Shown here in pieces: positions 45,459 through 63,313 of a stretch of DNA of 64,000 nucleotides. The translations under genes were made by a program, and so were the position numbers. How positions within the stretch are numbered: position 1 is the stretch's first letter; the number at the start of each line of letters is the position of its first letter. The DNA is from Klebsormidium nitens (Eukaryota; Plantae; Klebsormidiophyceae): NCBI GenBank assembly GCA_000708835.1, contig DF237048.1, positions 1 through 64,000 on the forward strand. Direction: 5' to 3'. Below the pieces are notes generated by a model. The model was not told the origin of the DNA and did not search any database. It saw only the letters and a program-made list of their open reading frames with translations.

Positions 45459-48384
45459 ATGCCGCAGCGGCACTCCAGGAACAACAATGACCTCGCCATC
45501 TTTACATACGAGGAGAGGAGGGCGCTAGGATATGGCACGCAAAAAGAGAGGCTTGGGAAGGACTCTGTGAAACCCTTTGATGCCTGCTCTTTGTGCCTCA
45601 AGACCGTGATTGACCCCATGTGCTGTCAGAAAGGCCACCTGTTCTGCAAAGAGTGCATCTTTGAGTGCCTGCTGGCGCAGAAGAAGGACATTGCAAGGTG
45701 AGAGAGCGCACTTTTTGCTTATTCTTTCCTTGTGGCACTTGAATATGATTGTCAAGAAGAATCGAAGAAAGAAACAAACAGGGGGTCTCTTGAACGAGCT
45801 GGTAGGACGGTGATGTTAGTTCATTGGCGCTTTCATTCAGGAGCGAACTCAAGCAGCCCCTCCTTTAGGAACTGAAACCCAGCGGGGTGCTTTGGAGTCT
45901 GCATCAAATATGTTAAGACGGGTTGAGAATGAGAGTCTGAGCTCACTTCCAGCCAGCCAAGGTTGTGATCCAAATCAATGAGTTGACGGGACGGTTGGGT
46001 CTGAATAAAGATGTTGCATATGAAGACTCAGTCAGGTCTCTAGATGTCTAGTAGGCTTGTGGTTGTATTCCAGTTCATTTTCTATTCACCTTGCCGTCGC
46101 AATCAACGAAGGCCGAGCCTTACATCTTGTTTCTCCCATAAGTGTGGCTAGCAATATATGCCCTCCTTGCTACCTTGTCGCCTTCCCTGCAATGGAAGGG
46201 TAAACTGCAGACCCCAGCACCATATTTGCGTAGTAGATTGCAGTAGTGGTTGCGTGCCCTCAGCCTTGCAGGAATGCTTTGATATGTCTCCTTCCAGATA
46301 GCTTGCTAAGGACTTTGCGACCGCGCATCATGGACACTTCTATAGACTGAAGTATGTGCTGAGACCTGGTTTGGCGGGTGTGCAAACTACGCTGCAATAG
46401 ATGCAATACTTTTTGAGGTTATGAGAAATCACAATTAAAGCAGATACTGGATGATGCAAGAGAAGCAGGTGGGGAATCAGAAACCAAGCTCTGAAAGCTG
46501 TCGTTGTCGATATCTGAAGAGGTAATTCTGAATTGTAAAATGGGCAGGTCTTTTCCGATGTGGACCAGTTTGGATCACCCGGGGGTTGAGGGTGACGGGG
46601 TACTTTCTGAGCAGTACAGACGTGTGTTCTTTCACAAATGCATCAGCCGTTTGTGTTGCAAGCAGCCATGGCCCTCCGAGTTGCCAGGGCAATCCCTGTG
46701 CATCCTAACAACAGGACGGAAGCCTTTCAAAATTGTCAAGAGATTCTCTGGATAATATCTCTTTTAAGATGTCTGCGACAGAGGAGACCACAGGAGACAG
46801 AGTCAGAATGACCATCTTCATGGCCGCCAGCATAAAAGGGTACGAAATGACCACCGCTGCCCCATTTTTATTCGGTCGCCGCGTGTGCTCAATCAGCAGC
46901 TTATGCCAGAAGCTGCTTTAAGGGGCTATTTTCGAAATGGAAGAAAGAAGGTAACGACGTTTAAAAGCGACATTTTCACGATGGTAACATTCTATGCAGG
47001 CAAAAGGCCCTGTACGAGGCGCAGTTGCGAGAGGACCAAGAAGAGCAAAGGCAAAAGGAGTTGCGCGAACGGGAGGCGCAGCTGGCGGCGTTTGACCGGC
47101 AGAACAACGGGGCCCTTCCAACGGCCGGCGAGCGGCGGGCAGAGGGGGAACAAAGCGCAGGCTTTCATGGAGCTTCGAGCAAGAAGGTGAGTTGGCTTAT
47201 CCTTGTGGTGTTAATGTGACGGGTTAAGCGCAGACGATTTATGAGTTCGAGAAAGGAACGAGAGTAGTCAGGCTTGTCTGATAGTTCGAGCAGGCGGTGC
47301 CACGTGCGTTGGCCCCAGATGAGAGGGCCGTTTGCCGAGGCTGGTTCTGGAGCCAGTGCAAGTATGGCAGGTTGCTGCTGTAGAGGTTCGGCCGAAGTCA
47401 AGGTCACCAGTCCGTTTGTTGCAATTAGGGTCCTGAATACTTACCTCCGAGACCCACTCGAATGACTGGTCAAGCATCAATCGTCGGGGCTGACTCTTTG
47501 CTGAGGACGGTGAAAGGTTCCTTCAATCGTGATGGAGAGGGATCTGGACCTCTCGGCTTGTCGAGAGGGGTCCTGTGCAGCAAGACGTGCACAGTATACT
47601 GAGACGCCAAGCGAGATTGTTCCATCTGGCGCTCGCTCAAGCACCTGTAGGATTTGTACCCAGCATCTGTCAGGCAACAGACAAGCTGTCTATTTGCACC
47701 TTGATAGGGTGGCGGTACGATTGAAAAGTAACCCATGCCAAGTCGCATGCGCTCACTTGCTCGACGAAGTGCGTCAGGATCTGCACGTCATCTCCGCAAC
47801 GTGAAGCAATGGTAGCCGAATCAGGGCGGCCTATCAAGTGGTGTGCAGCGCGATCCGTACAGTGTCAACTGAACAAGCTCTTGCCTTTGCAGGTGACGGA
47901 CTTCGAAGCTGAGGCCGTCCGCAACATGAAGGCGTTCTGGTTGCCGCAATTGGCCCCCCAGGCCGAAATTAGGGTAGAGGCGCCGCAACTAGAAACCAAG
48001 TGTCCTGTAGCCTCGGAGAAACTACGCCTCAAAGACCTTTTCGCCATCAACTTCACACCCGACAAGCACGTCGATGAAGGGCCGGGGGCCAAAGACCGCT
48101 TCATTTGCCCGTCCTGTTCATCCACGTTCACTAACACCTCTAGTTTGGTAGCGGTCTCGACGTGCGGGCATGTGCTGTGCTCGAAGTGCGCGGCGAAGTT
48201 CGTCGAAAAAGAGAAGGCGTGCTGTGTGTGCGCTAAGCCGTGCAAGTCGAGGCAACTGGTAGCGGTAGAAAAGGGAGGGACGGGGTTCGCCGGGCATGGG
48301 GATGGCTTGGTAGCGACGGCAGTGAAGGCGCTGGGGGTAGGAAGCGGACTTTCAGATGTTCGGCCAGCAACTCGTGTAACATGA
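45459..48384 (+). CDS. NOSIP: Nitric oxide synthase-interacting protein (split RING/U-box-like E3 ligase); 3 exons
   Basis: Exons 45459-45697, 47000-47186, 47893-48384. Motifs: MPQRHSRNNN, YGTQKERLGKDSVKPFDACSLCL, GHLFCKECI, KAFWLP, KLRLKDLF, FICPSC, CGHVLCSKC, GGTGFAGHG. Confidence 0.95.
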
Positions 48385-50276: not shown

Positions 50277-53200
50277 ATGGCAGCGCCGCCAAGAACTCTC
50301 ACCGGTGAGTCCTTTGAATGATTGTTGCCCTTGAGCGTCAAGTCCGTAAAGGCTTCAGGATGTTTCCCAGATTGCTCACTGATTGAACAACTTGCTTGGG
50401 AAATGCTGTCACGAAGGAGGGATATTGAACAATGCTCCTAGGCGTCTCCAGCAGGTGGGGTTTTTTCAATATGCTGCGGAAATTTGATTTCAGGCAGCCT
50501 TTGAGCTCGTCTCCGGGTCGCGCTTGCTCCTTTTGGCACAGTCCAAGTGAAATTGGGAAAGAGTCTTGTTCAGTTCAGCGCAGTGTTTTGAACCCTTCTC
50601 CTTGTCATGGACCATGATGCACGCTGGTTTCACCATCAGAATGAGCACTTGAACTGTTAGCGCAGATCAGGAGCTCGATGACATCCTTTTCTGCTGTCTG
50701 GTTTTGAAGACTTTTCTACTACTATATGAGATTCGAGGAAGGTTGGCTTTGTCCACAAAAAATTGGGAGTTCGAAATTGAACAGCTTCCGAGATCCCACT
50801 AGTCAACAAGGAGCGATTCAAGGAGCAGCAGGAAGAGCTTTCTTCTGTGATCACCGTCAAGAAGTTGGTCTGCTCTGCTGGGGATCGCCGCTGTTCGGCA
50901 GTTTGCCAGCATCTTTTCGCAGACTATTCTCTGGTTCAGCATTTGCGCTAAACTCTCAAGTACCATGCCACGGCTTCTGCCAAATGATTTCTTTACAACC
51001 TAAAAGCTAGGTTCCCATCCCATGGCACATTTTTCGGCAAGCTTTTGTTCAAGCGTGACTTCCGGATTCTGTTTCGAAAGCAAGGACGCCCTCTCCGTGT
51101 CCGCTTCCTCAAAATGCATTCTTCTTTTTTTCGTACACTTCGTGAAGTCGTGCAGAGTCAGAAAGAACCTGTTTTCTCGAAGGTTTTTCAGAGCACGTCA
51201 TAGTTCAAGAGGTTTGTTGTGCGTTTGTTCAATCGTCTTCACTTATGCTTTCCAAGAGGCATCATGTAACATTCATAACGTTACTTTGTTCATCGTTCTT
51301 CATCAGCAGGCTTGCTTGTGGCTACGCATGAGGATCAATTATACTCAAATTTTGCGATCCCTGTTCCAACTTTTCCTTGTCCAGCTTTCAATGGCTGAGC
51401 TTCCAAGATTGCTTATCCACTGCCTTACTAACTTCATTTCTATGGATACCAAGTGGCCTTTCTGACCATCTCTTATGAACATTTTCCGCAGCCCTTATGC
51501 ACCCGGAATGGAAGGAGTGTGCGGAATGCCTCTCACCAGAGGGCCGCTGGAGCACCCACGTGTCCACCGACAAGCCGATCTACCGCCAGGGTGACACCTT
51601 CCACATCCGCGCAGTCGTGCTGCACCCCATCACGGGGGAGCCGGTGTCAGACGAGAATCCGCAGAACCGCGCCTACGACATGAACGGCACCATACAGGTA
51701 AGATCTTGGGCCGTATGTTTCAGATGTTGCAGCTTGCCAAACGGATGGAACCTTTGAACGTCAAAGCGGGTATAGCTGGAATCCTCTCAGGGATCATGCA
51801 TTTAATGTAAGAAGGAAACAGCAAGCTCTTTCGTTCGCTTCACGATTTTCGGCGTGTCTTTTCACGCTCGCATCAAGAGGACGAGTTAAGAAGCTATTGT
51901 GACTCTAACAAGTGCTAGCTTCTTTCTCAAAAAGCATCCATGTTGTTTATAGCTCGAAATATCTTTGCACAGATAGAACGAAGAAAGGACCGTGCTGGGA
52001 TATCGAATAACGGCGTTCAAAAGACCAGCGCAACTCTCTCTTGCGCAGGTCATATCGCCAAAGGAAAGCGTGGAGGCGACTATGTACATTGACGGCCCCA
52101 TGGAAAGCGTGATGTATAATAAATGGAGTGTCCCCGAAGGTCTGTCGGGGGGTGAATACACTCTTCGATACACGCCGCGCGGCTACAGCGGTATGGGTCG
52201 GAACAGCCCCCCAGCAGAGCGCAGATTTCAGATCCGCGCTTTCCGGAGCCCCAAGCTGAACGTGAGGGTGGAATTTCTGGGAAGGGGGTACGGCCCCGGG
52301 GATGAGGTCAGGGCGAAGGTGAGAAAGCAGGAGTCAGAATCATCGACAGGGTTCCAGGGGTTGAGGACTGTAGAAAAGTCGGATTGTATTAAAATTCTGG
52401 AAACCTCTATTGGGTCTCTGCAAGATATAAAACTTCACAGATATACAATGGAGCTCGTTCTGTGACGCCTGACAGTCCGGCAAAAAGGGCCCGGGGGCGC
52501 ACGAACGAGCATAGAAGCCTTTAGAAGGTCTAGAATAACGCAGTATATACCTTCGTTCCTCGTTCTTTTTGAATGATATCGTTCACATGTGGAAGGGTGA
52601 CAAGTCAGCAAGGCTGCAGTTCACGTGGTATCGTTCCGCGGCGGCCTCGGAAACAGACAATCTCGTACAAACAGACATTGGTCTGGCCCGTACCGTTATG
52701 ATCAGCTTCTCATTCTCAAACTACAAAGGAACGCTTTGCCAAAGCGGTATGACCATCCATTGAATCTAAAATGTGCTTCTCCGTTCATTCAGCCACATTT
52801 CCACCAATCCTGTCCGTCCAGGTCTCAGTAACCCGCGCCGAAGGCGGCGCGCCCCCGGCCGCGACTCCCGTGACGCTCTCCGCGCGCGTCGACGGTGCCC
52901 CGGTTCACACTTCCCCGGCGGCCCTCGACGATTCGGGGGTATGCTACGTCACCTTTTCGCTCCCCCCCGAAATGAAAGAGGGCCTGGGCGCGCTGAACGC
53001 GCTCGTATCCGACGGGGGAACCGTCGAGAGCGGCAGCAAAACGATCCCGATCGTGCTGCAGACTGTGAACTTGGAGTTCTTCCCCGAAGGCGGGGTGCTG
53101 GTTCCAGGTGGGAATCTCAATTCCAATGTTTGGAAAACTGTTTTGCAATCTGATTAGTAGCATCTGATAGCTCGTCTACAGAGACAACGATTCATGTTCA

Positions 53201-56200
53201 AAGCGACGTGGATTTCTTTCAAACGAAGTGGTAAAAAATGCGCTCTTAAGATGTCTAGTTGTTCGAGAGATGCTTGCGCGAAATTCGCGAGATGCAGCCT
53301 TGACGCGAAGTTCCAAACACGAAGTAGCAGGATCTGGACGAATAGGTACTACGATTGAAAATAACGATATCATTAAGCCGCTACCTTTCTATTCAGGATC
53401 TGATAACATCAATCATACCGGCACAGGTCTCGAGAACCGGGTCTACTTCGAAGCGCGCGACCCAACAGAGGAGCCCGTCGACATCGCTGGAGAGGTGTGG
53501 GCGGTCGGTGGGAATGCGCCCCTTGCCACCTTTGCCGCAGTCCACGAAGGCTGTGGAAATTTCGTATTCACACCGATCGCCGGTCAGGCGTACGAGGCCC
53601 GCATTACCAAACCGGGCAACATCAAGAAACCGGTGCCGTTGCCAGCGGTAGAGGAAGCGATCGCGGACGGGCTGCCACGTGTCGTTCTGCGAGTGGACGG
53701 TTTAGCCGATGCGGAGATGGCCGAGGTGGAGAAACCTCCAAACCCCGAGGAGTTTGCGGTCGACGTCACCGTCGCGAGCGCGGCCGCGGCGCTCTTTCGG
53801 GTCGTTCTGTACAAGCGCGAGGTCGCCCTCGACAGCAAGGACGCGGTGATCCTCTCCCCGGGGGGGTCCAAGAAGCTGTCGCTGCACCCCCCAGGACCGG
53901 AATACGCGGGCGTCCTGCGGGTGACCGTCTTCGCAGAGGACGGCGACGATTGGACGCCCGTCGCGGAGCGGCTCCTTTACCGCGTGCCAGAGAAAAATCT
54001 CCACGTGGCAGTCTCTGGTGGCTCCAGCGCGAGCGGCGGGGGGGACTGCGTCCCTGGGGAAAAGGCCCGGGTGGAGGTGGCGGTAACGGATGCGGCAACG
54101 GGGGAGCCGGTTACCGGGGCCGTGGTGGGGTTAAGCGTGGTGGACAACAGTAACCTGGAGCAGGTGGAGCCGCGCAGGCGGCCGCCGCGCCTGCCCGCGA
54201 TGGCGCTGCTCGAGGACGAGGTGCGGCGCCCAAACCCTTCAACCCCTTAACCCCTTGAAAATAAAACTCTTAACCCTTAACCCTTAAATACTCTTACACT
54301 CTTGAACCGGTTAAACCTTTAACCCTGAATCCTTACACCTGTAAGCATTCAAACCGTTGGACCTTCGAATTTTACAGGCGGCGTGGCCGAAAGCATCCGC
54401 ACCGGCAACCATCTCAACGGTAGAAACAAAAACTTTGATGACCCGTTCAACTTTGATGATCCGTCCGGTCGCAAAGGCTTGGAAGCTGAAGCGCTTCAAT
54501 TCTGTCAGCCGCGAAGCCTAAACTTCGACAGTTTTCGTTGTTCGGGCTCTTGTTTCAAAACCGCTTGTGGCACAATGGGGAAAGCGCACGAGACGGGCAC
54601 GAGAACCGTTTAAGCCGCTCTAGTTGCTGGAGAGAATTCGACCCGGGCCATGACAAAATCTCGCGGTGTTGAGAACGAAGTCAGCGTTCCACTTTCGGCC
54701 ACGAAGGTCTTTGGCCTGGAATCCAGAGTCGTCCGTATCTATTTCTTCAGCGGTTATCACATCGTTCGAGAAGATACATGTTTGGTGCCAAAGAAACGGT
54801 TCGGCCTGGTTAAGATCTAGTGGACCTACTTCTAGCTTGGATCAACCTTCGCAGAAGTGGCTAGCGATCGATCGGCTCTGCTCCTTGTGACAGGTGGCGC
54901 ACCTGGATGACTCCGGCGCGTACATCGACGGCTCGGATCTTCCCGGCGGCTCAGACCCGTCCCTGGCCGTCGATCTTCTGCTGGGCACCCAAGGCTGGCG
55001 CCGCTTCCTGTACCGTGACCCCCTGGAAAAGCTGCTCGAAAACGGTATCGAAGACCAAGGCCAAAAGGTACGGACCTTATCAAGAGTCTGGTGACGTCAT
55101 GTCAAAGTCCCGGGAGCGATCTGCCTTGTCTTTCCTGCGGCCTGTTGGGATCGAAGCTAAGAGATCAAAGGCATAGACTTGTCAAAAGCGTCGCAAGAGG
55201 ATGAGATGCAGAAATGATTTGGCCATTTGGGTTTCGCCACCCAGCCTCTGCCGCTTGGCATCGTTCTCGAAGCGAAAAATGTAAACCGTTGCCTCTTCTG
55301 CTAATCCAACGCGGCACGAACCGATTGTGGTTGATCAGTTTTGTTTGAAGTCTCAGAAACTCACTGCTCGCAAGAAACAAACGGAACTGTGCGAGACGTG
55401 CATCAAGTAGTGAAGTTGTTAGTGGGTCGGTAACTCTGGAAACACGAGCTGCAAGTTTTTGCTAGCACTCTGTCAATATCCTCTTGCAGAAGCCACAAAT
55501 AATGCATCAAGAGCGGATGAAGTACATTCAGGGACTGTACAGGGGAGTCAGGGTACCCGGCCAGGGATCGAAACAACGCTTGCACACTGCAAAACAGTTG
55601 CGTCGTACAAGGCGTAACACTCGAGTCGTCGAGGCTTCAGCCAAGACCAAGCAAAACGCTCGTTCTCATTCAGCGCATCTTTGTCCTGACACTCGATCGT
55701 GCATCAAAAAGCGTAAACAGCACAGCGCCACATCTGACATCTGACAGGAAAGCATCAAAATAACCAGTAAAAGAAGAAAATGAACGAGAGTTTGCTGCTT
55801 TTTTTGGCAGGCGAAGGCGCAGCGCGCGGCCGGCGTGCGCGTCAACAAGGATCCGTACGGTCACTCGTACTACCAGGGGATGGCCCCGGGCGCAGCTTTT
55901 GGCGCGAGCGCGGGCGCGGTCGGAGGAGCAACGGAGGACGAGGAAGATGAAGACATGGGGTTCAGCTTGTACGATGCTGATGAGTGAGACATCTGAACCC
56001 TTTCTTGTATGTTCGTCGCGAGGTCAAGGTCTATGATATTGAGGAGTTAGGTAAACCCTTTCTTGTATATTCGTCGCGGGAGTAAGGTTGCAGTTACACG
56101 AGATCTTGCCCGATCAGAAATTGGAGGTGATAAAGTACTTGAGTTGTTGTGTCCCACGTCTAGGGTCTACGAGCGAAGGGCTGAACATTTTTGAATCCTC

Positions 56201-59200
56201 TTTTTAGCTTTGATGCCAACGCAACTCAAAAATACGCTACTGTAGAGCAGACGGGGTCTGAAATCGGCAATCATCCAAATACTTAAATTCTCAAGTCGTA
56301 AAAGTCCACAAGAATTGTTCTACGTATTCCATTCCCGATCAAGCGGCTTCCGGGAAAGACCTAATTTGTGCCTCGACCTCAAAATGTACAAATCAAATTA
56401 CATCAGAATGTTTGGGTCTCCAACCAGAAGATAAGCAGAGCGCGGACAATGCCGTTTCAGCTCACTGAAACGGCAAGTTCGGTCTTTTCGTCCTCTGCAA
56501 CCGCAATCGCAATCGCACCCTATAACCGCACTCCTCGCCTTGTTTCCGCAGGTCAGTCGGCCTTCAAGGCGTCCAGAGTGTTTGGAGCCTCCCAGATGAT
56601 GGGATATATAGCTTCTAGGCAAGAATAGAGACTCGACCATTTTCTATGATACATTATTTTGTAGTCTTACCGTTGGATCTAATGTCCGCTTTTTGACGCA
56701 CTAACCAAACATGCAACAAAAGAAGACACTAATCAATGAAACAATAAAAACACACTGAGATAAGATGAAACAATGCTTTCTGCAGGTCAGCACGGCCGGC
56801 CGGTCTTTTGGGCGCCGTCTTGGGCCGTCGCACGCCGACTCCAGCAGCAGGCTCGACCGGTCCCTCGCCCGGTGACGCTCCCCCGGTCACATCCCCCGAT
56901 GAGCAGAACTTGCCGGAGTGGGCGGGGAATGTCCCCGAGCAATCTGAGGAAGGGGCTCAGGCAGCAAAGGATGAGGGCGACCTGGAGTTTCCATTTGCTG
57001 ATCTGGACGCTGACGTGGATCTCGATGAGGAGGACGAAGCTGACGTGGAAGGTGAGGACAAGTCTGGATAGACTCGACGAGATTCTTGTGTGCATTCATC
57101 ACTTGGATTTACGGTCCCTTGTCACAGTTGTGCATCCGATGCTTCGAAGCGGACTGTTTACGTTTGACTGCCCAACCCACAACTGAAGAAAGCCTGAGGT
57201 TTTGAAATCTCAAAGACCGGTAGTGCTTCTCTTCGCGCAATCGCAAGCGAGGCAACCGCCGACTCCGAAAGGGCAAATCTGGGTTTCTCTGAGAACAATC
57301 TTCAGATGGTTGAAGTAAACCAGACGACCCGACCGCGAACCAGATCCGCTGTAAAGCGGAGTAGGCTTTCCCACCGGCTGTTTATTTGTTCTTTTTCCAC
57401 CACCAAACTTCTATGTAGATTGCCTCCTTGCGCGAGAACCGGTTTTCGAGATTTCCCTTTTCCTGTGCCGCAGCGGAGCGCGCGAAGAAGCAACAGCGGA
57501 TTCGCGCTTCCGTCAGAGTCTTTGCTCACGAGCGACAATCCACAAAGAAGCTGCACCAAGCATACCTGAGGTAAACCGCCGCTTTCGTCAATGTCAGCAC
57601 CTTTTCGAAATAGTATCTGAACAGTTGACGTCTTGGACAGTATTCTCATTGTTGACTTCTTGGACCGCAATCGTCGCTTTCAAGAGCTGCTCTTAGGGAT
57701 GATCTCCTTCTCTCAACAATCAGACCCGGAAAGATTGCACAACGGTCAAATATCCGCAATTTCCAACATTTATGTTCTTCTCCCAGAACCTTGTGACGAC
57801 CTATTGTCCACTCAGACAATCTCTCTAGAGATCATTCAAGGAGTTCAGGTAGTTACGCTTTCCAAGCCGTTCCCGTTCCGCTCCTTCGTTCCGCCGCCCT
57901 GCCTTCGTAGGTTGACTAATCTGCAGGCCGCGAATCGTCACGGATCCTGGCTTCAGCTATTTGATGCCCTTATTTGTTTCCTGGTTCAAGGACGGGTCCA
58001 TTACGAGGAAAGCAATCAAAACTTCCCTTCGTTGAAGAGCGAGACTCATTCGAACGCTTTTTGCTTGTTCCTTTGTCACCCGTGATTGATCCTCGAACGT
58101 AAATCATTACAATTGGTTTTGTTGAATTAAGGGCTGACTTTTGCATGATAAACTCCTGCAGGAGCATCCGCCGGTCTGACTTCACGGAGACGGTCTACTT
58201 CGCCGCATCCCTAGTTACCGACGCGCGCGGCCGCGCGGCCGCGGAGTTCGACCTGAGCGACTCCATTACGTCCTTCGCCGTCATCGCCGACGCCCACAAA
58301 GCCGTCGAATTCCAAACCGAGGGCGAAACCATTACCACCACCGTTACCAGGAACGGCACGACCGTTAAGGCGACCGCGAAGGGATCCTCCCGGACCGTCC
58401 GCACGTCGGCGCTCGGCGCGTCGAACGGGGTCTTCAAGATCCGGTCGGTGAAGCCGTGGATGCCAAGTGCCCCCTGGAGCTCACGACGACCGACCGGGTG
58501 CTCCTACCGGTCACTCTGACCAACGTGACGTCAGAGAACGTCACGGTGGCGGCTAAGGTGGGAGTGCGGGGGCCTCTGTCGCTGGAAGCAACGGAAGAGA
58601 TCACCGGCGGGGCGCCAATGGACGTCGACGCCCCAGGGGATCCCCCGGCCACTTCCACAACGCTGAAGCAGACTCTGGAGGGCGCCGAAAGCGTCCGGGA
58701 GATCGTCCGATTCGTCGCGGGGGGGGCCGCTCTCACGGCGGCGTCTAAGGCCAATCCTGACGAGCCCACCCCCCTGGCGCGGGGATCGGTGACGGTAAAC
58801 GCCGCGGCTTCGGTTCGGGGGGGTCCGAAGAGGGGCGGCCAACTGCACAAGGATAGCGTCAAGAGAACGTTTGCGGTGTCGCCGAAAGGATTTCCCCAGG
58901 AGCAGTCAGTTGGCGGAATGCTCAAGCCCGGAGGGGAAAATAGAGTGGGCGGGGAGTTTGCGCTGCCGGAGGACACGCAACCGGGGAGCGTGGTGACGTC
59001 AGTCACGGTGTTCCCGTCGCCAGTGAGTCTGTTTCTGCTCGCGCCATCTTTCGTGAGGCATGACGATAAATCAAGTTACATACCACCAACTTTGCGGCTC
59101 AGGCTGAATGGTCGTGCTTTATTCATCTCACGGAGGCGTCCAGTCCCGTGCCTAGTTCCCTGATCTACCCTCACTTCGTCCTCGAAACCCTTCTCTTCTC

Positions 59201-62200
59201 AATGCAACATTTCTCTCTGATACAACAAAGCGGATCTTATAGCCTCGAATGAACTTCCTGATCTTTCTTCAGAATCTTATCGACACTTTCCGTCCTGAAA
59301 ACAGGTGCCCATGTGATTGTCGATGACTCCCGGGATCCTGTTCGCAATCTCGCTGAAAGAGACCCGCTTATGCCTTGCGCCAATTCCGCAGAAGCAGACC
59401 GTAGAAGTTCCTCGTCTTTTCCAGGTGGCAAGCCTGACGAGCGCCGCGCAGGCTCTCGTCCGCGAGCCGTACGGCTGCTTCGAGCAGACGTCAGCAGCCG
59501 TGTTCCCCAACGTCATGGCGCAGCAGTACTTCAAGACGCACCCCGGGGCGTCGCCAAAGCTTATGGAGAAGTCGTATATGCTATTGGGCTCCGGCCTGGA
59601 GCGGCTGAGGGGATTCGAGGTGGAAGGGAGCGGCGGTTATGACTGGTTCGGAAAGGCGCCCGCGCACGAGGCGCTGACCGCATATGGGCTGCAGCTGTTC
59701 ACGGATATGGCGCAGGTAGGAGCCCGTATATCCGTTGGGTAAGCTCTTATGTATCTTTTCCAGAGAGGATTCTGCGCGGAGTGGCTTTTGGGCCGGTAGC
59801 ATCGGTTTCAAGAGCACTTCGCATCTTGCAGATAACTGTATGGATTGCGAAAGCCGAAACAATTGTTTTAGTTACATTGCCGGCCTCGTAGGTGATAACT
59901 CGTTCCTGCGCAATACTGAGCAAAACGGTGGCTCAACAATTCGTCAGCGTACGTCACGGCTGTTGACATCTTTTTCGAAGTTCGTTACAGGAGACACGGA
60001 CTGAATAAACAGAAGGCAGCGCCGCTTGTCTACGCTGGTGTTCTGCTCAGGTCCGCTGAGGTTCCAAAGTGTCGAATCCAATCGGTAGCTAGAACCGGTC
60101 GCCACGAAACTCCCGGGCCCACTCGGGCCTGTTTGGTCCCGGCTCCATGCCCTTCAATGTTCTTTTCTGCTGCCTTTGTTGTTCCGCTGCGAATAAGTTT
60201 GTAGTGACTCCCGCAACCGTTCCGCAGGTCTACCCCGTCCCGAAAGACATGATCCGCCGGACTCGCGACTGGCTCCTGAGCCGCAAGAACGACACCACGC
60301 GCGCGTTCAACATGCATACGTATACGGTGTGGGGCGGAGTCGGCGCGGCGCCTGCTGACGTCAACAACGCCTACATCGTGTGGTCGCTGACGTGTGCCAA
60401 CATGGGCGACAGCCTGGAGCCGCAGGTAGACTAATTCTAAAGTTTGCTCTGTTGAAACACTTGTGGTCTTCAGAGACCAACAATCAAATCAGCCCAAAGT
60501 CTAACATTCACATCGGAAACCTAACATTTTAGCACAGACTCTGAATTTCGAAACCTGAAACTCAGCTCCCAGTGCCAGGATCCAAGCTCTCAACGTCAGA
60601 TGCGGGAACTCTCAAGCTTTGCGATCCAGAACCTCTCAGAGTACGTTTCAGAAAGGGAAAGATAATACAAACCGCTTCTTGCTCTTCGCGCTTTGTTACA
60701 AGCAGTCCACCGTCCCGCTCAATACTGCCTCTCGAACGTCCGCTCTATGTGCAGATTGCCAGCCTAGTGGAGCAAGCGGCGACCAACAAGGACCCGTACT
60801 TTGTTGCCATGGTCGCCGACACGCTCTACAAGGTGGGGCGCAAGGATGAGGCGGGACAGCTGGCACGTGGCCTCCAGAAGCACCAGGTAAGAGACGTGTC
60901 GTACCGGAAGCAAGTACCGAAACCTGAAACCTTCATTCCATACCGGTTTGCTCCCTTCTTCAGAAGGACTTCGCGATTGGTACCTTCGAAGCAAGAAAAA
61001 ACGTTTCAGAGGCAGAGGAACCTTTCTTGTGAAGATGGACGAAGGTTAGCCGTCGCCCTTCCCAGCTCATCTTGTAGTGCTTGACGAGTTTGATACGTTG
61101 TTCCATGTTCGCGTCCGTTTCGCGACGGGCACATTCGACGCACAGATTCTGTGACATATCCCGGTCTTGAGACTCATATTCCTTATCTAAAGTGACTCTG
61201 CAAAAACATGGGGACTTATTGCCAGGATGTTAGAGAGGAAAAAGATCCCACAAAGCTTCTACCTGAAGCGGATTCTATCTTCAGTCTTCCGCAACTTTTC
61301 ACGACCCTACTCGAATTTTCGAAACTTCTGGACCCGCAACCCTTACACCCCGAACTCTGCAGAAGGCCGACGGTTCCGTCCGTGGCGCCACGACGTCAAT
61401 CACGCGCTCGGGCGGCGACTCCCTGCTCGTCGAAACCACTGCCCTGGTCGCCCTCTGCTGGCTGAACGACGTCGAAACCTTCGGCGCGGCCGCGCGTCGC
61501 GCGATCGACTGGATTGCAACTAGGTGCGCGGGCGGCAGATTCGGATCCACGCAGGCGACCGTGCTCGCGCTCAAAGCGATTGTGCGCTATGACGTCGCGG
61601 TGACGTCAGCGCGCGCGCCCGGGACGGTGCACTTGGTCGTGGACGGGGAGCGCGTGGAGAGCATAGCGTATGGCGCGGGAGCGGTGGGCGCCATAGCATT
61701 TGGGGACGTGGCGCCGCGGATGAAGGCCGATGGGCGCGCGCGGAATGTGGAGGTGGAGATGGAGGGCGGGGCGCTTATGCCGTGCGCGATCCAGGTGACT
61801 TCATAGCGCATACAACCCTCTTCTCTCGCGCAGAACCGCTGTAAGCCAAGCGTTGCTTTTTATTGGAAGCGGACTTTGTTCGCGTGGGCGCATCCTAGAA
61901 GCGCCGGCGAGCGTTTCAATTCAGGCCCTTAGGCACCAGAATAACCCAATAGATGTCTCTGGCAAAACGCCAAGGGCGTCAACAATCCATCTCTTAGATT
62001 CACTTAACTCATCAGAAGGTGATTGACTCCACTTCATTTTAGTAAGATCCTTTGATGCTACGTCTCTGGTCATATGGTCATGTTCCGCGTGTAACATTTG
62101 GCAACCCACCCGCTCCGTTTCCGCTCCAGCTCCGCTACCACTCGGAGCGGCCCCCCTCCGCGGCCGCGGATGCAGTCGCGCTGCGCGTCGCGCTGGCGCA

Positions 62201-63313
62201 GCCGGCCGCCCGGGATGGCGACCTCGTCGAGGTTTTGGTGACTGAGAAACCAGACGAGGCGCTTCCGATCCGCCCAATGACATTCCGCTTTCCGCCGCAG
62301 GTCCGCTACCACTCCGAGCGCCCCCCTTCCGCGCCCGCGGCCGCGGTCGCGCTGCGGGTCGCGCTGGCGCAGCCGGCCGCCCGGGAGGGCGACCTCGTCG
62401 AAGTCCTGGTGACCCTGAATAATACAAAACCAGACGAAGAGCTGCCCATGACGGTCGCCATCGTCGGCCTGCCGGGGGGCCTCGAGCCGCGGCACGACCA
62501 GCTCAAGGAGCTCGTGACACGTGGCGACGTCGCGTTTTACGAGGTATGGATCCTGCAACTCCCGGAAGCTCTCGGCTCTTTCGCCAGGGAGCTCAGTAAT
62601 TGCCAGGTATCTTTGGTGGAAGGACAACGGAGCAAGTAAGCGGATCACTGCATTGGGGTGTCCTCCACGTCGGCTAGGAGGAGGTGCATTCAAGTGAAGC
62701 GTGGTCATTCCAGCATGGCAGATAGGTGCATGATTGCACGAAAGAGCCGTCCAAGCGCTCAAGTCCGTTCTCTCGTCGACGCGGGAAGATGCGGTTTCCC
62801 TAAATTGGCTGAGGCCTCCGCTTCTTACTGCGTTGTTGACACTCCGCTGAAGATACTGCGCTGTTAACGTCACGCCACTCATCTTCGAATACACCTGAAC
62901 GTCCGATGGGCACGTTTCTTGGCGTCCTTATCGTTCTCTCCAACCGGAGCTTCCCTTGAATCTGGCATCTGTTACCAAGCCGTCACCTACTCGCAAGAAT
63001 CATTCAGTCCTCCAATCTCGCATCTGTTATCAAGCCATCACCTACTCGCAAGAATCATTCACTCCGCCAAGACGAGAAGAAGGAGCAGGTCCCTCAAAAG
63101 CTCCACTGTCCTTTTTGATTGCAGATCCGCGGCCGTGAGGTCATCTTCTACTGGCGCGCCCTGGCGGCCAATCAGACGGTGGCGCTGCGCGTGGAAACGA
63201 CGGCCGCGGTTCCGGGCGAGTACATCGGTCCCGCGTCGAGAGCGTATCTCTACTACACAGATGAGCTAAAGACGTGGGCGGAACCCCTGAAGTGCAGCAT
63301 CGCCCCAAAGTAG
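50277..63313 (+). CDS. Alpha-2-macroglobulin / thioester-containing protein, bacterial-type, about 1,550 aa, 16 exons, with one apparent frameshift
   Basis: Exons 50277-50304, 51492-51697, 52049-52318, 52822-53107, 53427-54220, 54894-55067, 55811-55983, 56786-57051, 57474-57570, 58162-59022, 59425-59715, 60228-60425, 60755-60886, 61363-61794, 62301-62543, 63125-63313 (4640 nt; all junctions phase-consistent, one internal shift at ~58456). Motifs: STDKPIYRQGD (MG2), FFPEGG, DLLLGTQGWRRF, RRSDFTETVYF, LSDSITSF, thioester PYGCFEQT, GRFGSTQATVLALKA, GLPGGLEP, GPASRAYLYY. Confidence 0.92.
54232..54335. repeat. Degenerate telomere-like (TAACCCT/AACCCCT) microsatellite just inside A2M intron 5
   Basis: aaacccttcaaccccttaaccccttg...ttaacccttaacccttaa...tttaaccctg. 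Confidence 0.6.
62101..62300 (+). repeat. In-frame partial duplicate of A2M exon 15 with its own acceptor
   Basis: ctccag|CTCCGCTACCACTCGGAG... (start 62130) mirrors ccgcag|GTCCGCTACCACTCCGAG... (start 62301). The offset is 171 nt (57 codons) with no stop. Confidence 0.9.
62965..63065. repeat. About 55-bp intronic tandem duplication (A2M intron 15)
   Basis: gcatctgtta(c/t)caagcc(g/a)tcacctactcgcaagaatcattca at 62965 and 63020. Confidence 0.9.

Follow-up and report, generated by a model that had tools for sequence, protein, structure and literature searches.

A ribosomal stalk-tail look-alike in the putative bait region of an algal macroglobulin gene

In the duplicated alpha-2-macroglobulin (A2M) and TEP genes of animals, the domains of the protein are kept and the baits are hypervariable. 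The A2M baits described so far have about one-fifth of the length of the algal insert reported here. To our knowledge, no known bait copies a ribosomal peptide. Integrated decoys, in which a copy of a host target is carried inside a sensor or trap protein, are known from the NLR immune receptors of plants. The proteins known to bind the tail of the ribosomal P-stalk are GTPases, a kinase, and N-glycosidases, and not proteases. The tails of the plant stalk proteins P1, P2, and P3 read EEsDDDMGFSLFD (EESDDDMGFSLFD), with DMGFSLFD as the green-lineage form (PMC6637900), and in the solved complexes of stalk tails the acidic part contacts basic residues and GFGLFD lies in a hydrophobic pocket (PMC5086656, PMC2632931). 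A literature search found no non-ribosomal protein described as carrying a copy of the stalk tail, no stalk decoy, and no paper that pairs Klebsormidium nitens with macroglobulins. The CAGE complex (bioRxiv 10.1101/2025.09.22.677704) was set aside as a comparison, since it belongs to another family, in which the beta-sandwich domains bear only a resemblance to MG domains.

Here we describe a macroglobulin gene of the green alga K. nitens (assembly GCA_000708835.1, contig DF237048.1), one exon of which encodes a close look-alike of the stalk tail. The window, that is, the whole stretch of DNA that was analysed, comprises positions 1 to 64,000 of the contig (64,000 nucleotides). The features that concern the insert and the exons around it are as follows.

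53427..54220, + strand: large exon with a weak match to the bait-region domain A2M_BRD (PF07703, E 0.0063), seen in RNA contigs and 82% identical in amino acids to the closest relative, L001
54894..55067, + strand: exon that closes the conserved A2M_BRD part (LLLGTQGWRRF) and opens the insert, in frame between the GT..AG joints 54220/54894 and 55067/55811
55811..55983, + strand: exon of the finding (exon 7), which opens with the conserved stretch AKAQRAAGVRV..PYG and continues through a Gly/Ala hinge and an acidic run to the stalk-like motif; based on the RNA contig joints 55067/55811 and 55983/56786, translation, and alignment to relatives
55934..55975, + strand: stalk-tail look-alike motif EDEEDEDMGFSLYD; based on sequence, a PDB search, a shuffle test, and the L001 counterpart EEDEDMGYSLFD
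56786..57051, + strand: second insert exon, Pro/Gly-rich and then with the acidic island DEGDLEFPFADLDAD...DEEDEADVE; based on joints and translation, the island being conserved in L001
57474..57570, + strand: third insert exon, with the basic segment ERAKKQQRIRASVRVFAHERQS..; based on joints, 78% identical in L001 and with a recognisable counterpart in both L002 and L003
58162..59027, + strand: exon with the start of the A2M domain (PF00207), by Pfam; contains a 7-nt deletion

Four RNA runs from a single study were used, which contain one-third of the words sampled from 53400-59399, as expected if they cover exons only. The joints were taken from assembled RNA contigs, the resolution of which does not extend to rare isoforms or expression levels. 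One contig in each of the runs X1 and X3 (2483 and 2642 nt) links the exons at 54220/54894, 55067/55811, 55983/56786, 57051/57474, and 57570/58162, all of them GT..AG, and the joined sequence holds a single open frame that runs from the large A2M_BRD exon into the A2M-domain exon. Exon 7 begins after the acceptor CAG/GCGAAG at 55811 and ends at the donor GA/GTGAGA after 55983, and its translation consists of AKAQRAAGVRVNKDPYG, the Gly/Ala hinge GMAPGAAFGASAGAVGGAT, EDEEDEDMGFSLYD, and ADE. The contig joints and the one open frame show that this exon belongs to the macroglobulin transcript, and because it has 173 nt, skipping it would shift the frame; it is a constitutive coding exon of the gene. 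A sequence-only reading of 55811-55987 had already located the motif at 55934-55975 and a read-through stop at 55985-55987, both of which are there, and had set inclusion of exon 7 in the A2M transcript as a check, which the X1 and X3 joints bear out.

Over its exons, the gene gives Pfam matches in the canonical order MG2, A2M_BRD, A2M, TED_complement, and bMG10, the last of which is the C-terminal domain of bacterial A2M. Since the exons were scanned singly, the matches to MG2 (E 2e-5), A2M_BRD (E 0.006), A2M (E 6e-4), and bMG10 (E 0.007) each stay under the cut-off, whereas TED_complement lies above it (38.9 and 28.4 bits against 22). The closest matches outside the algae are bacterial A2Ms, at 30-33% identity, and YfhM and the Salmonella protein are among the PDB matches of a family profile. 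With E. coli YfhM/ECAM and the Salmonella A2M, the algal gene has in common its matches to MG2, TED (CxEQ), and bMG10; it differs from them in having introns and in that no lipoprotein or signal sequence was seen. By domain order and nearest matches, the gene is an intron-rich, bacterial-type thioester alpha-2-macroglobulin of a green alga, and we designate it a lineage-specific paralogue, “type A”. No conserved sequence was found 5' of 51488. At the putative start at 50277 (MAAPPRTLTGESFE), neither a hydrophobic leader nor a signal peptide is seen, which is consistent with the cytosolic location that had been proposed for the protein but is weak evidence for it; such a location is possible.

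Between GWRRF and RRSDFTETVYF, the protein has an insert of about 200 residues, which is formed by the end of exon 54894-55067 and the three small exons and is placed between the Pfam matches to A2M_BRD and A2M (PF00207). By sequence, this would be the position equivalent to the bait, and the earlier placement of the motif in the bait region stands in this sense. The motif also lies between LLLGTQGWRRF and RRSDFTETVYF as that reading had it, but two further exons (56786-57051 and 57474-57570) precede the RRSDFTETVYF exon (from 58162). The insert contains 20% D+E and 40% G/A/P/S/T, has a net charge of -19 and several acidic islands, and is probably disordered. When it was to be placed on solved A2M structures, the sequence and profile of exon 10 (from 58162) gave no relevant match, and the exon-5 profile matched the MG2 parts alone, owing to its bacterial rows. 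Like the bait of the bacterial type-I A2Ms, the insert occupies the slot between the bait-region domain and the A2M/MG7 domain; unlike that bait, it is split over three exons and is strongly acidic, with conserved islands. The pattern among paralogues recalls the A2M/TEP proteins of animals, which, unlike the algal protein, are secreted: the tails of the insert cannot be aligned, whereas the flanking exon 54894..55067 keeps 82-88% amino acid identity in L001, L002, L003, and L005.

These relatives come from word-index searches with the large upstream exon and with the A2M-domain exon, which led to ORF-sized pieces on eukaryote-like contigs, and the comparison covers five loci.

L001: closest relative; same exon-intron structure, exons 71-94% identical in DNA, introns unalignable; motif present
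L002 and L003: about 68% amino acid identity to the window gene; motif absent
L005: second gene from the same sample as L001; motif absent
L004: exon 10 90% identical in DNA; on a contig without the bait region

In L001, exons 5-10 form an open frame that uses homologous GT..AG sites, and the DNA identity amounts to 85-87% for the two flanking A2M_BRD exons. The lengths of its three insert exons depart from those in the window by 27, 15, and 3 nt (9, 5, and 1 codons), all multiples of three, and these differences, together with the open L001 model, suggest that the insert is under coding constraint. Exon 7 of L001 keeps the start KAQRAAGVRV.K.PYG and has EEDEDMGYSLFD in place of the motif: 10 of the 12 residues are identical, the two aromatic residues are swapped (F/Y), and there are three synonymous differences. 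The hinge between the start and the motif has only about 30% identity, with in-frame indels. Another acidic island, DEGDLEFP[FL]ADLDAD, has been retained in L001 as well. Conservation of the motif is thus seen in one pair of sequences, and a binomial estimate for keeping 10 of 12 residues is about 3e-4 against the identity of the hinge, but about 0.07, which is not remarkable, against the exon-wide identity of 59%. In L002, L003, and L005, the exon shares the start ERAAGVR and then runs into other acidic tails without the motif (the exon of L002 ends in EDMGGEQGWEEE); in L002 and L003, EDMG stands as far from the exon end as it does in the window. We read L002 and L003, on this sequence pattern, as orthologues of another paralogue (“type B”), so that the motif would be a feature of the type-A lineage. 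The expectation that close orthologues conserve the motif therefore holds for L001, the sole orthologue-like locus available, and not for the paralogue lineages of L002, L003, and L005.

With the core of the plant tail, the motif shares seven of eight residues, the eighth being Y for F, and the Ser of the green lineage is present. The pattern of an acidic run followed by MGF[GS]LFD appears as EDEDMGFSLYD in the window, EDEDMGYSLFD in L001, and DDDMGFSLFD in plants. Local alignment to the plant P2/P3 tail scores 56. Of 5000 shuffles of a 600-residue stretch of the host protein, none scored above 43 (mean 23, SD 3.3); when shuffles of the exon and of the insert are included, the means range over 18-23 with an SD of about 3.4, and 43 is again the maximum. 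Since the score exceeds every shuffled one, the likeness goes beyond composition. By rough extrapolation, the chance of such a match would be about 1e-6 per 600 residues, that is, well under one per proteome and a few over a whole scan. The motif pattern was not found elsewhere in the six frames of the window or in L001-L003.

The database searches point to the same family at a lower level. In a phmmer search of the PDB at E<=10, 15 of the 17 sequences retrieved were C-terminal tails of P0, aligned through the final residue (E 0.45-9). The whole exon matched no Pfam family at E<=10. The Ribosomal_60s profile (PF00428), the test proposed by the sequence-only reading, has a cut-off of 28.1 bits; a 38-residue piece reached 8.3 bits and the exon of L001 reached 14.7 (E 0.046), so that this check came out negative (8-15 bits against 28); for the L001 exon it was nevertheless the sole family reported, over profile positions 49-88 of 88. 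The Ribosomal_60s matches cover only the last 15-40 profile positions, and nothing of the N-terminal dimerisation part. No database significance for the likeness was reached in the PDB, Pfam, or representative-protein searches. In other words, the resemblance to the P-stalk that had been claimed is upheld in its green-lineage form and against shuffled controls, but passes no database threshold. Among 1.84 billion representative proteins, phmmer with the exon retrieved two bacterial “putative Ig” repeat proteins, which match its PYG..G/A/T-rich part and are unrelated, and no others; metagenome scans with exon 7 and with the TED exon gave no matches, and the word-index search with exon 7 gave one candidate, none being scored. 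Readings of the segment as an FFAT-like or LC3-interaction motif were set aside, the residues they would require 3' of the motif not being kept in L001.

The algal segment and the tails of P0/P1/P2(/P3) have in common a flexible Gly/Ala-rich hinge, an acidic run, and MGFSL with an aromatic residue and D. The differences are that the algal protein is large and non-ribosomal and has no N-terminal domain of a P protein, and that acidic residues stand where plant tails have a phosphorylated Ser. A further difference concerns position: the motif is internal in the spliced reading frame, followed by ADE and more than 100 further residues of the insert, and the near-C-terminal stalk tail that had been envisaged for the read-through form is thus not what the spliced frame encodes.

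The reading that we prefer, and to which we would give an even chance, is that this hypervariable bait carries a short linear motif specific to the lineage, which is probably a docking determinant, with the proteins that bind stalk tails as its obvious candidate partners. The insert of the type-A gene would be the segment that differs most among the paralogues, as in other A2M/TEP families; its acidic run and MG[F/Y]SL[F/Y]D would copy the green-lineage stalk tail and be kept under constraint; and the motif, as we infer, would present an acidic-plus-hydrophobic peptide to the basic patch and hydrophobic pocket of stalk-tail binders. Such docking would give the type-A paralogue a target different from those of its sisters, and the thioester trap would fire only once the disordered bait beside the motif had been cleaved. 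If the motif is functional in this way, it would be the first reported stalk-tail copy outside the ribosomal proteins, as far as the literature search found, and the first A2M bait that works through mimicry of a host peptide, and a protease trap of bacterial type, which a green alga has acquired, would then be tied to surveillance of the machinery of translation.

The main objection to the docking reading, a serious possibility that falls somewhat short of an even chance, is that the resemblance is incidental: a bait or spacer of low complexity and acidic composition, perhaps adapted to proteases directed at Asp/Glu, may have come to look like a stalk tail, and its retention in L001 may reflect modest divergence. 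An insert with 20% D+E, a net charge of -19, and several acidic islands offers room for such a coincidence, the statistics are below threshold in all databases, and the type-B acidic tails at the same place differ, sharing only EDMG and an aromatic residue. With a third-codon-position identity to L001 of 81% in the large exon, 12 residues could also persist without selection. On the other side, the shuffle test shows that the match is not a product of composition; the identical residues of the exon cluster at its start and in the motif, whereas the 25-35 residues in between have diverged and contain indels; and the Ser of the motif is the very residue of green-lineage tails, not just any variant. 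Should the resemblance be incidental after all, the insert is simply another hypervariable bait.

A stronger version of the docking reading, akin to the cytosolic decoy-and-trap put forward from the sequence alone, is an intracellular trap in which the integrated stalk-tail copy makes the bait a lure for stalk-docking enzymes or toxins, or for a protease that attacks the tail, and in which these are captured covalently through the thioester once the disordered segment beside the motif has been cleaved. We consider this unlikely. The bait position and the likeness agree with it; the known stalk binders, however, provide no protease step. Since no ribosome-inactivating protein is a protease, the docking of one would not by itself set off an A2M trap. 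The comparison with the integrated decoys of plant NLRs, which would make the motif a copy of a pathogen target, is a conceptual analogy only, family and mechanism being unrelated. The frame of the gene, moreover, is broken before the thioester domain, as the following features show.

58517..58519, + strand: premature TGA in the shifted frame; based on translation of the spliced transcript and of 58163-58519
59473..59487, + strand: thioester motif GCFEQ in the TED exon, by ORF translation; 3' of the frameshift and out of frame with the upstream part

Nucleotide alignments with L002, L003, and L004 place the 7 nt missing from the window between 58457 and 58458. The three loci have the intact frame (KPFYVDAK, KPFHVDVK), which translation finds intact in L005 as well, and in the window the conserved continuation VDAKCPLELTT... 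lies in another frame than the spliced one. The RNA contigs over 58219-58998 match the window without gaps, deletion included, which shows that the sequenced organism really has the deletion and that it is no slip of the assembly. A 20-nt GT..AG “micro-intron” at 58448-58467 that would restore the frame was rejected, since the contigs are unspliced there and its removal would take away the conserved VKPF.VDAK. The frame from bait to TED is thus interrupted by a stop 5' of the thioester domain, and the motif-bearing protein of this genome cannot contain that domain. Because the downstream exons are open and GCFEQ, identical in L002-L005, is kept, the break must be recent. The window gene is a recent pseudogene or the source of an N-terminal fragment only, and the trap is disabled in this genome. 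If the trap reading were nevertheless true, the gene would have been a guard of the translation machinery of an undescribed kind, and the 7-nt deletion would have removed it from this strain recently. A natural experiment is offered by the paralogues, some of which have the motif and some not, and by one strain whose motif-bearing gene has just been broken.

Common descent, in which the hinge, acidic run, and motif were captured into the A2M gene from the last exon of a P1, P2, or P0 gene, is in our view very unlikely. The P proteins do have a Gly/Ala/Pro hinge, an acidic run, and MGFSL[FY]D in the same order, and the HMMER alignments, about 35-40 residues long, extend to where the P0 tails and the Ribosomal_60s profile end, but the scores are far under the family thresholds. 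It is the type-B genes that make capture unlikely: paralogues without a stalk-like tail share the ERAAGVR exon start and the offset of EDMG, which favours evolution in place.

The remaining alternative concerns the intron that follows exon 7.

55984..56785, + strand: intron 7, with the donor GTGAGA and an in-frame TGA at 55985-55987; based on the joint 55983/56786

That an isoform retaining this intron yields a truncated protein ending just past the motif, with a near-C-terminal stalk-like tail, is highly improbable: read-through does give an immediate stop in the window (GAG TGA) and at the same place in L001 (ATG TAA), but any phase-2 GTGAG/GTAAG donor produces one, so that it is expected in many introns, the distance from motif to stop is not constant (4 residues in the window and 8 in L001), and intron 7 is without contigs in the four runs, with zero depth in the bins 56000-56599, although contigs drop rare forms. 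The stop noted by the sequence-only reading is therefore present in the DNA but is a trivial by-product of the donor, with no contig depth in the intron to go with it.

The RNA contigs also hold a trace of another member of the family. The loose end of one contig encodes ASLTQALEAL, which is the TED form of L002 and L003 with 6 mismatches in 30 nt, whereas the window encodes ASLTSAAQAL. A second A2M gene is thus expressed in the same organism.

Compared with four related loci, the alpha-2-macroglobulin (A2M) gene of the window lacks 7 nt at 58457/58458, and this deletion shifts the reading frame to a stop at 58517-58519, upstream of the thioester domain. The same 7-nt deletion is present in the assembled RNA contigs. 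In the exons 3' of the deletion, the reading frames remain open, which argues that the frame break is a recent event in the history of this gene. In the related type-A locus L004, about 260 nt with intron-like ends (~905-1165) lie inside an exon that is unbroken in the window (~58590-58630); in other words, the presence or absence of an intron appears to differ between these close relatives.

Other RNA contigs match the window at 58173-58237 and 58969-59025, but they overlap the window gene by only 57-65 nt and are divergent beyond. Their recorded depth is ~100-630, compared with ~9-13 for the contigs of the window gene; genes cannot be ranked by contig depth. The continuation of one of these high-depth, short-overlap contigs takes the form seen in the type-B relatives L002 and L003, and therefore at least one A2M gene other than that of the window is expressed.

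Within the bait-position insert, the exon following the one that carries the stalk-like motif (a look-alike of the P-stalk tail) encodes a second acidic-hydrophobic island. Between the window and L001, the closest related locus, this island is conserved to the same degree as the stalk-like motif, and L002 has a weaker counterpart, VAFPAVDMGGEMEVDD. The positions of these features and of the upstream neighbour of the A2M gene are as follows.

Near 57000-57051, in exon 56786-57051 of the window: second acidic-hydrophobic island, DEGDLEFP[FL]ADLDAD...DEED.ADV
L001 3260-3540: counterpart of the second island region
47725-48381 of the window, + strand: upstream neighbour gene, Rtf2-type RING finger (Pfam PF04641, 34.6 bits)

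The bait interval of the type-B relatives contains an additional stretch, a putative exon, at 10908-11354 in L002 and 13041-13520 in L003. Both loci keep it open, with in-frame indels. Its translation includes MAPPGAM... and acidic runs, together with EEEAGF[GK].GESAF, which faintly recalls an acidic run with GF after it.

Several repeats were also observed. Shortly after the start of intron 7, a direct repeat of ~30 nt occurs twice (55996-56030 and 56052-56086; aaccctttcttgtat.ttcgtcgcg..g..aagg). Towards the 3' end of the A2M gene, the translation of 62046-62636 contains a tandem pair of ~50-residue copies, RYHSERPPSA..ALRVALAQPAAR.GDLVEVLVT, which may reflect either a duplicated exon or a duplication within an exon. 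A 55-nt unit at 62959-63070, in the space separating the gene's last exons, is present in two copies with a 91% match.
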